The position numbers and the translations under genes were made by a program. The notes under the pieces were generated by a model. The model saw only the letters and a program-made list of their open reading frames with translations, was not told where the DNA came from and made no database searches. A DNA stretch of 64,000 nucleotides from positions 1-64,000 of IMG/VR virus record IMGVR_UViG_3300044957_000763; one strand, written 5' to 3'. The first letter of the stretch is position 1. Each line of letters begins with the position of its first letter. Of this stretch, positions 32,772 to 33,390 are shown piece by piece.

Positions 32772-32858
32772 TGGTGGGGGCCGTGGGATTCGAACCCACT
32801 CAGGCAAATGCCAACAGTTTTACAGACTGGCCCAGCTCTCCTACTCTGGCGCACCCCC
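32772..32858 (-). tRNA. tRNA-Tyr(GTA), first of pair, long variable arm
   Basis: GGGGGTG/GGCCCCC acceptor (G7:G66 mismatch), A73-CCA; CAGT-CTGTAAA-ACTG; GGCA-TT-TGCC variable arm; GTGGG-TTCGAAT-CCCAC. Confidence 0.85.
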
Positions 32859-32885
32859 GGTTGTATAGTTATAGTCACTTTCCAT
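32841..32885 (-). CDS. Mini-ORF MESDYNYTTGGAPE* (Tyr-codon leader), stops inside the D loop of tRNA-Tyr
   Basis: ATG GAA AGT GAC TAT AAC TAT ACA ACC GGG GGT GCG CCA GAG TAG, preceded by purine-rich GAAGAGAGAAAGAAA. Confidence 0.6.
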   Translation of the reverse strand: MESDYNYTTGGAPE

Positions 32886-32931
32886 TTTCTTTCTCTCTTC
32901 TCTTACACGTCGATACAAACTGTCTGCGCCA

Positions 32932-33007
32932 GGGGTGACCAAAGGAACTCGAATCCTCAATCTTCTGGGCCACAACCAGACGCTTTAACCGATTAAGCTA
33001 TGGCCAC
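32932..33007 (-). tRNA. tRNA-His(GTG), second of pair (canonical arms; no genomic G-1; 3' end CCT)
   Basis: GTGGCCA/TGGTCAC acceptor, C73; GCTT-AATCGGTTA-AAGC D arm; TCTGG-TTGTGGC-CCAGA; T loop TTCGAGT. Confidence 0.9.
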
Positions 33008-33142
33008 ACCTCGCGCGGTGTTCAAAACTTGGGGCGACCGAGGGGTATCGAGCCCCCTAGTGATTTGGTTCACAGCCAAACCCCCTCGCCTTCTGGGTCC
33101 GACCGCCATGTTATTCAGTTGTGTATGATGATGGTCGTCCAT
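32993..33142 (-). CDS. Mini-ORF MDDHHHTQLNN... (49 aa; His-codon leader) reading through the first tRNA-His and stopping in the D arm of the second
   Basis: AGGAAAAGAACA-ATG GAC GAC CAT CAT CAT ACA CAA CTG AAT AAC; it is the tail end of track ORF 32993..33241. Confidence 0.6.
   Translation of the reverse strand: MDDHHHTQLNNMAVGPRRRGGLAVNQITRGLDTPRSPQVLNTARGVAIA
33030..33107 (-). tRNA. tRNA-His(GTG), first of pair, atypical D/T arms, G-1:C73 encoded
   Basis: G-GCGGTCG/CGGTCGC-C-CCA; TTTGG-CTGTGAA-CCAAA; T loop CTCGATA rather than TTCRANY; no U8. Confidence 0.8.
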
Positions 33143-33166
33143 TGTTCTTTTCCTAACTACAAAATT

Positions 33167-33240
33167 TGGCTGGCACGGGTGGATTCGAACCACCATCTCC
33201 AGGGTAACAGCCTGGAATTCTACCATTGAAATACATGCCA
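33167..33240 (-). tRNA. tRNA-Asn(GTT), second of pair, canonical
   Basis: TGGCATG/CGTGCCA (U1-A72), G73, CCA; CCAGG-CTGTTAC-CCTGG; GGTGG-TTCGAAT-CCACC. Confidence 0.92.
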
Positions 33241-33243
33241 CTA

Positions 33244-33319
33244 TGGAGGCCCGCCTGGGTTCTGACCCCAGCCCTTACCGTTTAACAGACGGCCGCAACT
33301 ACCAGCTTGCTCACGAGCC
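33244..33319 (-). tRNA. tRNA-Asn(GTT), first of pair, atypical
   Basis: GGCTCGT/GCGGGCC, T73, CCA; GCCGT-CTGTTAA-ACGGT; G8 and G14 instead of U8/A14; T loop GTCAGAA. Confidence 0.75.
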
Positions 33320-33366
33320 TTGATGTTCGCGCTCCGGCGCGTCACATCAAGTGGCACACCTTCGCG

Positions 33367-33390
33367 CTAATTATTGTCGTTGTCCTCCAT
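33367..33390 (-). CDS. Mini-ORF MEDNDNN* (Asn-codon leader) upstream of the tRNA-Asn pair
   Basis: GAGGAAAAGACA-ATG GAG GAC AAC GAC AAT AAT TAG; good SD (GAGGA) at 7-nt spacing. Confidence 0.6.
   Translation of the reverse strand: MEDNDNN

Follow-up and report, generated by a model that had tools for sequence, protein, structure and literature searches.

Leader-peptide transcription attenuators (trpL, hisL, pheL and thrL, and pheM upstream of the pheST synthetase genes) have a short ORF with a run of codons for the amino acid whose supply is sensed, and the position of the ribosome on that ORF decides between alternative RNA pairings. In this study, we analyzed a 64,000-nucleotide stretch of a huge phage (positions 1 to 64,000 of IMG/VR record IMGVR_UViG_3300044957_000763, hereafter the window) in which three groups of tRNA genes, for Asn, His and Tyr, are each preceded by a tiny reading frame rich in codons for that same amino acid. 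The transcript of these genes begins with a leader that has the complete layout of a classical attenuator (33583-33412), whereas the three mini-ORFs have no terminator downstream, precede the tRNA itself rather than a biosynthetic or synthetase gene, and in two cases have no stop before the regulated RNA. No attenuator that controls tRNA genes is known to us, and none was found in full-text searches of the literature.

Other described systems share individual properties with this locus. In translational attenuation leaders of the ermCL/ermC type, as in the His unit, the strand occupied by a ribosome pausing in the leader ORF is base-paired with a downstream functional element, so that pausing would release that element; here the released element would be a tRNA acceptor strand and RNase P site and not a ribosome-binding site, and the pause signal would be cognate-tRNA supply and not an antibiotic plus a nascent peptide. 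Pairing of the leader ORF with the element it would control was found for His, was not found for Tyr and was only indirect for Asn, a mixed outcome that does not settle membership in this class, and the Asn and Tyr units are built differently. T-box riboswitches are also cis RNAs that read a specific tRNA through a codon-like specifier and adjust genes of the same amino-acid system, but they regulate synthetase, biosynthesis and transporter genes, not tRNA genes. Reading here would go through the ribosome, no Stem I, specifier loop or T-box motif is present, and a covariance-model search (cmscan, permissive filters) of 30000-36000 against Rfam returned no T-box hit, nor one to any other curated family of this kind, at E <= 1. 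In tmRNA, a reading frame and a tRNA-like domain lie on one RNA, whereas here there is no tag ORF or resume codon, neither ARAGORN nor Rfam called a tmRNA, and the ORF is upstream of, and runs into, ordinary elongator-type tRNAs. Phage tRNA sets that replace host tRNAs destroyed by defence nucleases, such as the T5 tRNA-Tyr against retron-associated PtuAB (PMC11555353), likewise supply extra tRNAs for a narrow set of anticodons, in several body and anticodon-loop variants and next to RNA-repair-type genes (here Ro60, Y RNA and an Rnl1-type ligase). Those studies describe the tRNAs and not a sensing leader, and whether this phage faces such a nuclease is unknown.

The tRNA operon and its mini-ORFs

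The features of the operon, all on the minus strand, are as follows.
33623-33651, minus strand: sigma-70-type promoter of the tRNA operon (TTGACA, 17-nt spacer, TATAAT)
33470-33583, minus strand: first-layer leader ORF (MRFSLNNHNGN...VHNYPNMVRANWGYQA, then stop), rich in Asn, His and Tyr codons
33412-33448, minus strand: intrinsic terminator of the first-layer attenuator (14-bp stem plus U tract)
33367-33390, minus strand: Asn mini-ORF, MEDNDNN and stop (3 Asn and 2 Asp codons)
33319-33351, minus strand: Asn leader hairpin (CUUGAUGU / CGCGC-CGGA-GCGCG / ACAUCAAG), whose 3' strand ends on nucleotide +1 of N1
33244-33319, minus strand: N1, non-canonical tRNA-like Asn(GUU), with U73 and T loop GUCAGAA
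33167-33240, minus strand: N2, canonical tRNA-Asn(GUU), G73
33108-33142, minus strand: leader part of the His mini-ORF, MDDHHHTQLNNM (frame open to 32993)
33030-33107, minus strand: H1, non-canonical tRNA-His(GUG), with G-1 and C73
32932-33007, minus strand: H2, canonical tRNA-His(GUG)
32859-32885, minus strand: leader part of the Tyr mini-ORF, MESDYNYTT (frame open to the TAG at 32843-32841 inside Y1)
32772-32858, minus strand: Y1, tRNA-Tyr(GUA)
32748-32755, minus strand: element C (GUGGGGGC), complementary to the Y1 3' acceptor strand plus A73-C74 (32781-32774)
32661-32745, minus strand: Y2, non-canonical tRNA-like Tyr(GUA)
32284-32394, minus strand: YrlA-like Y RNA (context)
30572-32194, minus strand: Ro60/Rsr orthologue (context; used to find relatives)

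The promoter matches the consensus at 12 of 12 positions, is the only promoter-like site on this strand in 32100-33800, and is conserved in L005, L007, L009, L010 and L012 (L-numbers denote loci retrieved from other genomes for comparison). An ORF of similar length to the first-layer leader, with an H-x-Y motif, is kept in L007, L009, L010 and L012. The segment UUCGGGCU (33496-33489) can pair with the 5' half of the terminator, and, as read directly from the sequences, this pairing covaries in relatives. The terminator, which has weak Rfam similarity to Thr and rnk leaders, is the only terminator-like site on the minus strand of the region (33448-33417) and lies upstream of all three mini-ORFs; no terminator or additional promoter was found between any mini-ORF and its tRNA.

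The observation in the first-pass annotation, that each same-anticodon tRNA pair (GUU, GUG, GUA) follows an ATG mini-ORF with cognate codons and that two of these frames read into the tRNA, was confirmed, as was the purine-rich motif followed by ATGGA shared by the three starts. The Asn mini-ORF reads ATG GAG GAC AAC GAC AAT AAT TAG. The His mini-ORF (33142-32993) begins ATG GAC GAC CAT CAT CAT ACA CAA CTG AAT AAC ATG G, is open through the whole of H1 and stops at TAA 32995-32993 in the D loop of H2. The Tyr mini-ORF (32885-32841) begins ATG GAA AGT GAC TAT AAC TAT ACA ACC GGG and stops at TAG 32843-32841 in the D loop of Y1.

The membership of the pairs is less uniform, as ARAGORN and Rfam called only N2 (Rfam 64.5 bits), H2 (64.1 bits) and Y1 (31 bits) as tRNAs. 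N1 was called by neither, but its minimum free energy fold is a cloverleaf with anticodon GUU and an odd T loop, and it is replaced by other Asn(GUU) bodies in relatives, all with U73. H1 was not called in the window, although its homologues in L010 and L012 were called tRNA-His by ARAGORN and compensatory stem changes appear in the alignment. Y2, which was also folded, scored 37.9 bits against the Rfam tRNA-Sec model, below its cut-off of 47, and its L014 homologue was called tRNA-Tyr. Recognition of the six pair members by tRNA models is mixed.

The numbers of cognate codons (3 Asn, 3 His and 2 Tyr within 7 codons) are greater than expected by chance. In 20,000 dinucleotide-preserving shuffles of each spacer, an ATG-ORF with at least the observed number of cognate codons in its first 7 codons arose with P = 0.004 (Asn), 0.0016 (His) and 0.009 (Tyr), the product being 5e-8. 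Among 20 unrelated tRNAs in other retrieved loci, only one had 2 or more cognate codons in an upstream ATG frame, and that one lies in the 3' end of a real gene.

Conservation of the mini-ORFs in relatives

Conservation in related phages had been proposed in the first-pass annotation as a check of its idea, and it was found in five to six diverged lineages that we identified through the neighbouring Ro60 gene and a DNA pattern. The Ro60 proteins of these lineages are 93, 88, 75, 74, 70 and 57% identical to that of the window, and a further locus, L030, lies in a different genomic context and is followed by three tRNA-His genes. The ATG is invariant, the frame and matching codons are kept, and the start and cognate-codon columns are conserved as well as tRNA core positions, while the upstream spacers are not. 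The Asn mini-ORF is kept as a 7-8-codon ORF with its own stop (TAG, TGA or TAA at the same place) in all 7 loci (for example MEENDNN, MEEGNNI, MEDDNNNN and MEDDNKK). The His mini-ORF is kept in 5 further lineage samples, including L030, with a distance from the ATG to tRNA G-1 of 35, 41 or 47 nt, always in the same frame. The Tyr mini-ORF is kept in all 7 loci, with its last Tyr codon 3-9 nt from tRNA +1. Cognate codons do, however, fall to one in L014 (Asn) and in L010 (Tyr). His codons occur only in His units, Tyr codons only in Tyr units, and Asn codons are concentrated in Asn units.

The changes between lineages are of a coding type. Length changes of 3 nt (Asn), 6 and 12 nt (His) and 6 nt (Tyr) are all multiples of 3, as are all but one of the length changes overall, and synonymous changes include CAT>CAC, GAC>GAT, TAT>TAC, AGT>AGC and AAC<>AAT. 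In addition, the mini-ORFs persist while the downstream tRNA bodies are exchanged (at least 4 N1 types and 3 Y1 types), and the His mini-ORF and H1 are absent together in L009. The read-through beyond the leader has no conserved stop position or frame, so reading into the tRNA may matter only as the absence of a stop.

Only about 6 independent lineages are known. Scans with the His pattern in IMG/VR and in metagenomes gave mostly chance hits in coding DNA, of which only L024, L034 and L030 are real; scans with the Tyr and Asn patterns in IMG/VR gave only the window's own contig or chance hits; and no cassette was found in the GTDB representative genomes. Apart from chance hits, the scans with the three cassette patterns in IMG/VR matched only the window's own contig. 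Known phages gave only short tRNA-level matches, and Ro60 homologues at 55-56% identity (L015, L016, L035 and L036) lie in other contexts or lack upstream sequence. An insert of ~310 nt in relatives was considered as a tmRNA, which was not supported. Hits similar to that of the window's YrlA-like Y RNA (Rfam RF02553, 40.4 bits, below the gathering score of 69) were obtained in L002, L003, L005 and L010.

Pairings with the tRNA acceptor strands and possible function

A systematic scan of all six tRNAs in five lineages found flank-to-acceptor complementarity only at H1 (5' strand against the mini-ORF, P = 0.012-0.052) and at Y1 (3' strand against the downstream element C, P <= 0.01), exactly the two tRNAs that the ORFs run into. 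In the His unit, CGACCAUCAU (33137-33128) pairs with AUGGCGGUCG (33109-33100); this helix is 10 bp in three lineages but carries mismatches in the window's own clade (P = 0.03-0.15). Element C covaries with three different Y1 acceptor sequences in L009, L010, L012 and L014 (P <= 0.03 each) and is absent in L007, which also lacks Y2. In the Asn unit, AUGGAGG (33390-33384) is complementary to CCUCCAU at the N1 3' end (33249-33243), with P <= 0.02 in 5 of 7 loci, and a hairpin comparable to that of the Asn leader, reaching 1-5 nt into N1, is predicted in 6 of 7 loci, with different stem sequences in the L010/L012 clade. Alignment with MAFFT followed by RNAalifold was uninformative for this hairpin as the alignment was not structure-aware. 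Leader-trailer pairing is not a principle common to all units, being significant for Asn and absent for Tyr, and the post-stop repeat in the Asn leader (AGCGCGAA, twice), examined as a conserved region-1 versus region-3 switch, was significant only in the window clade. Whether the units contain mutually exclusive helices with one strand covered by a translating or stalled ribosome is therefore not decided by these pairings, and the three units do not share one architecture. No conserved cis partner was found for the invariant CAACUGAAU. The start regions fall in the 76th-98th percentile of predicted single-strandedness in a highly structured transcript.

We consider it most likely, with a probability of roughly 0.55, that the three mini-ORFs are cis-acting leader ORFs read by ribosomes. 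Each carries codons decoded by the tRNAs just downstream (Asn AAY, His CAY and Tyr UAY, always next to Asp GAC), so that the time a ribosome sits on the leader would report the supply of that charged tRNA. As no terminator follows any of them, classical termination control is rejected for this layer and the output is probably the folding or 5'/3' processing of the nascent pre-tRNA, with a ribosome paused on the leader preventing, or for Tyr imposing, alternative pairings that involve the acceptor-stem strands. What the sequences themselves demonstrate are the ORFs, their codon specificity, their conservation with coding-type evolution, the absence of terminators and the existence of the competitor helices; translation, an effect on tRNA maturation and the polarity of that effect are our inferences, as neither ribosome occupancy nor the response of the tRNAs to charged-tRNA supply was measured. 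Although purine-rich tracts lie upstream of the starts, their SD-like matches are only weak to moderate (-3 to -6.6 kcal/mol) and are not outstanding among the local ATGs. We favour the polarity in which scarcity causes stalling and more mature tRNA, because the first-layer attenuator has that polarity and because a ribosome on the His codons would free the H1 5' strand, although for Tyr the geometry suggests that a stalled ribosome would occlude the tRNA 5' strand, which is the opposite polarity to His. Together with the attenuator at the operon start, a textbook one carrying codons for the same three amino acids, this would give one global and three tRNA-specific feedback loops.

The interpretation in the first-pass annotation was partly supported. 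It had proposed a second, amino-acid-specific layer of control in which ribosomes run into the pre-tRNA and block its folding or RNase P processing when the cognate tRNA is plentiful, and stall upstream, letting the tRNA mature, when it is scarce, with the opposite polarity also considered possible. A second, tRNA-specific layer is the most economical reading of conserved, frame-preserving and amino-acid-specific mini-ORFs, and an effect on pre-tRNA folding or processing is plausible; initiation at the ATGs, a change in maturation and the polarity are not shown. Its suggestion of a duplicated cassette fits the shared ATGGA and purine-rich starts but was not tested further.

Of the alternatives, the least improbable, though still unlikely, is that the conserved leaders are untranslated RNA elements, either processing signals or acceptor-strand competitors for RNase P or RNase E, whose resemblance to cognate codons is a by-product of complementarity to the tRNAs. 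In the His unit, GACCATCATCA and CAACTGAAT are nucleotide-invariant, CAU-CAU is itself complementary to AUG-GUG at the tRNA-His 5' end, the complement of AUG-GUG-GUC reads GAC-CAC-CAU (Asp-His-His) in one frame, and CAACUGAAT is invariant although it contains three synonymous sites, so part of that conservation could be purely RNA-level. The weak SD-like signals and the complementarity of the Asn start to the N1 3' end are also consistent with this view. However, it cannot explain the Asn and Tyr codon runs, which are not complementary to their tRNAs, nor does it explain the invariant ATG, the length changes in multiples of 3, the conserved stop of the Asn ORF or the synonymous changes, including that in the third His codon, which lies outside the helix.

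It is also unlikely that the mini-ORFs are translated only to keep ribosomes on a long non-coding transcript, protecting it from Rho or RNase E scanning or coupling it to RNA polymerase, with no amino-acid-specific sensing. They are the only ORFs with start signals in about 1.3 kb of structured RNA between the promoter and rsr, and their leaders are A/U-rich and single-stranded, but protection needs no particular codons, whereas the codon identity tracks the downstream anticodon in every unit and lineage. Minigenes of the lambda bar type, whose translation sequesters or consumes particular host tRNAs through peptidyl-tRNA drop-off to the phage's benefit, are very unlikely counterparts. The ORFs are very short, are on a phage and, for Asn, end directly after the Asn codons, yet bar minigenes are 2-3 codons long, the Asn ORF has 7-8 codons, the His and Tyr frames have no stop before the tRNA, and depleting a tRNA while supplying two extra genes for it from the same transcript would be self-defeating. 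Chance ORFs in purine-rich spacers, which the small size of the ORFs and the many spurious frames found here by gene callers might suggest, are contradicted by the shuffles and by retention in lineages down to 57% Ro60 identity and in a different genomic context.

A more far-reaching form of the favoured reading, which we regard as tentative, is autogenous, codon-read control of tRNA production, in which a ribosome pausing on a tRNA's own codons in the 5' leader of the nascent pre-tRNA flips an acceptor-stem switch and so sets how much of that tRNA matures. In this view, the switch would involve pairing of the leader with the 5' strand in the His unit and pairing of the start region with the 3' CCA end in the Asn unit, while in the Tyr unit occlusion of the 5' strand by the ribosome would let a decoy take the 3' strand. 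Each unit would be a separate feedback loop nested inside a conventional attenuator, possibly as a phage response to host nucleases that destroy the Asn, His, Tyr and Asp tRNAs (GUN anticodons). Bacterial and phage tRNA genes are thought to be controlled at promoters and by general processing enzymes, and no case is known to us, or was found in the literature searched, in which the level of an individual tRNA is set by ribosomes reading that tRNA's own codons in its precursor. If confirmed, this would be a new regulatory logic in which a tRNA autoregulates through decoding, and a new output for leader-peptide sensing, namely RNA folding or processing rather than termination or exposure of a ribosome-binding site. 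It would also be a compact natural sensor for the supply of single tRNA species, useful as a reporter, and a hint about how huge phages manage their own translation components, perhaps under attack by tRNA-cleaving defence systems.

With regard to the neighbouring genes, a 295-aa protein was considered as a Pnkp-type repair enzyme, but this was rejected as there was no sequence hit and its model resembles GT-B glycosyltransferases. The assignment of the Ro60/Rsr orthologue is based on Pfam matches to TROVE (2.7e-34) and vWA_Ro60 (6.1e-57).

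Organization of the tRNA operon and its mini-ORFs

The window is the first 64 kb of IMG/VR contig IMGVR_UViG_3300044957_000763, a contig of 478,840 bp, and everything relevant to the mini-ORFs lies on its minus strand, in the following order:

33651-33623, minus strand: a perfect sigma-70 promoter
33583-33470, minus strand: a leader ORF of 37 codons
33448-33417, minus strand: the only intrinsic terminator of the region
33390-33367, minus strand: the Asn mini-ORF, MEDNDNN*, ahead of the six tRNA-type genes in three same-anticodon pairs
33319-33244, minus strand: N1, the first Asn tRNA-type gene
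from 33142, minus strand: the His mini-ORF, MDDHHHTQLNNM..., open through H1 and stopping at TAA 32995-32993 in the D loop of H2
33107-33030, minus strand: H1, the first His tRNA-type gene
from 32885, minus strand: the Tyr mini-ORF, MESDYNYTT..., stopping at TAG 32843-32841 in the D loop of Y1
after the tRNA array, minus strand: a YrlA-like Y RNA
after the Y RNA, minus strand: a Ro60/Rsr gene (TROVE plus vWA_Ro60)
further downstream, minus strand: an Rnl1-type RNA ligase

The three mini-ORFs read exactly as reported in the first-pass annotation, and the observation was confirmed. Its description of the tRNAs as pairs requires a qualifier, since ARAGORN and Rfam call only N2, H2 and Y1, whereas N1, H1 and Y2 are non-canonical. 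N1 folds as a cloverleaf with anticodon GUU, homologs of H1 are called tRNA-His in relatives, and the Y2 homolog in L014 (the most diverged of the syntenic loci described below) is called tRNA-Tyr. The codon content of the mini-ORFs is not what chance would give, as in dinucleotide-preserving shuffles of each spacer an ATG frame with at least the observed number of cognate codons appeared with P = 0.004 (Asn), 0.0016 (His) and 0.009 (Tyr), the product of which is 5e-8. In addition, among 20 unrelated tRNAs in other loci retrieved for this study, only one had such an upstream frame, and it sits inside a real gene.

Conservation of the mini-ORFs in related loci

Conservation in related phages had been proposed in the first-pass annotation as a check, and relatives were sought. 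Known phage records share only tRNA-length matches with the window. A search with the Ro60 protein, however, gave a graded series of homologs, and their contigs with the same gene order were retrieved.

Table. Syntenic loci and the identity of their Ro60 protein to that of the window.
L005: 93%
L007: 88%
L009: 75%
L010 / L011: 74%
L012: 70%
L014: 57%

All of these loci carry the Asn/His/Tyr tRNA array upstream of the Y RNA, and the mini-ORFs are present as well, although L009 lacks both the His mini-ORF and H1. L009 (GCA_018268375.1, contig JAFDWS010000002.1) is a syntenic copy of the whole module on a 1.36-Mb contig of a MAG labelled Armatimonadetes, which could be a prophage, a mis-binned contig or a clue to the host.

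Table. Mini-ORF peptides in the window and its relatives.
Asn: MEDNDNN, MEENDNN, MEEGNNI, MEDDNNNN, MEDDNKK; always 7-8 codons with an own stop
His: MDDHHHTQLNNM, MDDHHHSGQLNTENHM, MEDHHHSEQLNIASHM, MDDHHHSRQLNTNM; always ending in an AUG whose G is the tRNA's G-1
Tyr: MESDYNYTT, MESDYNYTI, MESDYTY, MESDYTN, MESDYSYTN, MKDDYNYQS

A DNA-pattern scan of metagenomes added two loci nearly identical to L005, as well as L030 (Ga0196964_10000657, 1301-1587 in the orientation analyzed), in which MDDHHHNQQLNM sits between protein genes in a different genome. In L030 the His mini-ORF occurs without the Asn and Tyr units, in a different gene context, and is followed by three consecutive tRNA-His(GUG) genes with different bodies. 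A distant Ro60 and tRNA-array locus, L003, has an ATG frame (3518-3611, MQINIHHHHYQHADPE) that runs in frame into a small gene with its own SD; it resembles a His leader, but it is not adjacent to the tRNA-His of that locus.

Several features of the mini-ORFs are signs of selection on a reading frame. The ATG is invariant, and the start and cognate-codon columns are as conserved as tRNA core positions, whereas the upstream spacers are not. His codons occur only in His units and Tyr codons only in Tyr units. Length differences between lineages are 3 nt (Asn), 6 and 12 nt (His, in which the distance from the ATG to the tRNA is 35, 41 or 47 nt) and 6 nt (Tyr, 27 against 21 nt), the only exception being L014 Tyr at 26 nt, where the tRNA body is a different one. 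Synonymous changes also occur, namely CAT>CAC, GAC>GAT, TAT>TAC, AGT>AGC and AAC<>AAT. Against translation, which was not measured here, is the finding that SD-like pairing is weak to moderate, although many genes of this genome also lack clear SD sequences. The start regions are among the more accessible stretches of a very structured transcript.

The leaders persist while the tRNA bodies behind them are exchanged, there being at least four N1 types and three Y1 types. The N1 of the window is replaced by at least four unrelated bodies among relatives (N1 of L005, L007, L009, L010, L012 and L014 were compared), yet all have the unusual discriminator U73, so that the 3' end reads (C/U)CUCCA, whereas N2 always has G73. 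The Tyr partners are likewise shuffled among at least four body types, and the anticodon-loop flanks differ within pairs. Relatives also carry an element of ~310 nt between H2 and the Tyr mini-ORF (L005 3395-3712, also L007 and L010), which has tRNA-like ends (5' UAUCGACG, and a 3' T arm followed by CGUUGAUACCA) but is not recognized by ARAGORN or Rfam as a tmRNA or as any other family. The window keeps only its first ~10 nt (near 32915-32906), and L012 has a 90-aa ORF at that place.

Pairing at the acceptor stems and the upstream attenuator

No terminator or promoter lies between a mini-ORF and its tRNA, and classical attenuation is therefore excluded for this layer. No curated RNA family, T-box included, matches. 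To determine what the mini-ORFs could act on, every tRNA's acceptor strands were compared with its flanks in five lineages. Only two relations are consistent, and they fall on the two tRNAs that the ORFs run into.

In the His unit, codons 2-5 of the mini-ORF (CGACCAUCAU) pair with AUGGUGGUCG, that is, tRNA positions -3 to +7. This is a perfect 10-bp helix in L010, L012 and L014 (P = 0.002-0.01), but it carries one or two mismatches in the window clade (P = 0.03-0.15). A ribosome paused on the His codons would keep the tRNA's 5' strand and the RNase P site free. A 9-nt motif inside the His leader (33122-33114, CAACTGAAT) is invariant in all lineages although the flanking codons change and it contains three synonymous sites; no conserved cis pairing partner was found for it, and in L010 and L012 it sits in the loop of a small covarying stem.

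In the Tyr unit, a spacer element, C, downstream of Y1 and just upstream of Y2 (32755-32748) is complementary to Y1's 3' acceptor strand plus A73-C74 (32781-32774), and it covaries with three different Y1 acceptor sequences (L009, L010, L012 and L014). The last Tyr codon lies 3-9 nt from the tRNA 5' end, and a paused ribosome would therefore cover part of the 5' strand, which would favor the pairing of the 3' strand with C. However, L007 lacks both C and Y2 but keeps the mini-ORF, so C may serve Y1-Y2 processing rather than the sensor.

The Asn ORF, in contrast, stops 40-52 nt before N1. A hairpin reaches 1-5 nt into N1 in six of seven loci, and the start AUGGAGG is complementary to the N1 3' end CCUCCA(U), with P <= 0.02 in five of seven loci. 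A post-stop repeat that looked like a region-1 versus region-3 switch is significant only in the window clade.

The operon starts with a complete classical attenuator (33651-33412, minus strand), which is itself unusual in front of tRNA genes. Its leader ORF reads MRFSLNNHNGN...VHNYPNMVRANWGYQA, with Asn/His-rich (LNNHNGN) and His-Asn-Tyr (VHNYPN) clusters, and has the textbook arrangement, in which an Asn/His-rich early segment is predicted to pair with a later segment (UUCGGGCU, 33496-33489) that can alternatively pair, as an antiterminator strand, with the 5' half of the strong terminator. The ORF, an H-x-Y motif and the antiterminator-terminator complementarity are kept, with covariation, in L007, L009, L010 and L012, the complementarity changing in step in L009, L010 and L012. 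Its polarity is the usual one, in that slow decoding of Asn, His or Tyr codons leads to read-through into the tRNA array.

Interpretation and comparison with known systems

We conclude that the mini-ORFs are most likely ribosome-read sensors, one per amino acid, that act on the folding or processing of the nascent pre-tRNA through competition for the acceptor-stem strands. Our analyses demonstrate the anatomy of the units, their specificity and their conservation, whereas initiation, pausing, the effect on maturation and its polarity are inferences. We favor the view that scarcity increases maturation, since the upstream attenuator has that sense and the His geometry fits it; the Tyr geometry fits less well, so the polarity was not settled by these data. 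The probability that the mini-ORFs are a translated, tRNA-specific cis-regulatory device is, in our estimation, about 0.55, and the specific acceptor-switch mechanism is more tentative. The interpretation in the first-pass annotation, translation-gated tRNA maturation, was partly supported.

The strongest alternative, although we consider it unlikely, is that the leaders are untranslated RNA elements. The nucleotide invariance of the His core and of CAACUGAAU supports this, as does the fact that the complement of the tRNA-His 5' end reads Asp-His-His in one frame, but it fails for the Asn and Tyr units, for the 3n indels and for the synonymous changes. Non-specific ribosome loading to protect the transcript is less likely again, as it does not explain why the codon identity tracks the anticodon. 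Bar-type minigenes are very unlikely, as the His and Tyr frames have no stop before the tRNA, bar minigenes are 2-3 codons long, and depleting a tRNA species while supplying two extra genes for it from the same transcript is self-defeating. Chance, the least likely possibility, is contradicted by the shuffle statistics and the comparative data.

The closest known systems are leader-peptide attenuators and ermC-type translational attenuation. Among the attenuators, pheM upstream of pheST is the closest, because it controls a gene of the translation apparatus with cognate codons, whereas T-boxes share the logic but none of the parts. Full-text literature searches found no description of leader ORFs controlling tRNA genes, in phages or in cells. 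Phage Ro60 and Y RNA loci (PMC4201824) and counter-defence tRNAs (PMC11555353) are known, but no such leaders were found described in them. All three mini-ORFs consist mostly of NAY codons (Asp, Asn, His, Tyr), which are read by the tRNAs with GUN anticodons that normally carry queuosine. The phage supplies several body variants of three of these four tRNAs, which fits a response to a nuclease aimed at that tRNA set, but this is speculation.

An extended -10-like TGTGCTATAAT (~32646-32636, minus strand) lies between Y2 and the Y RNA and is conserved in L005 and L007, so the Y RNA and rsr may have their own promoter. Two proteins are encoded between the Ro60 gene and the Rnl1-type RNA ligase (27710-30518, minus strand). 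One has 642 aa and an NPCBM glycan-binding domain. The other has 295 aa and is not a Pnkp-type repair enzyme; its predicted model (pLDDT 72.6, pTM 0.77) resembles GT-B/GT9 glycosyltransferases (Foldseek E = 8e-8, TM about 0.5). The gene order is conserved in all syntenic relatives.
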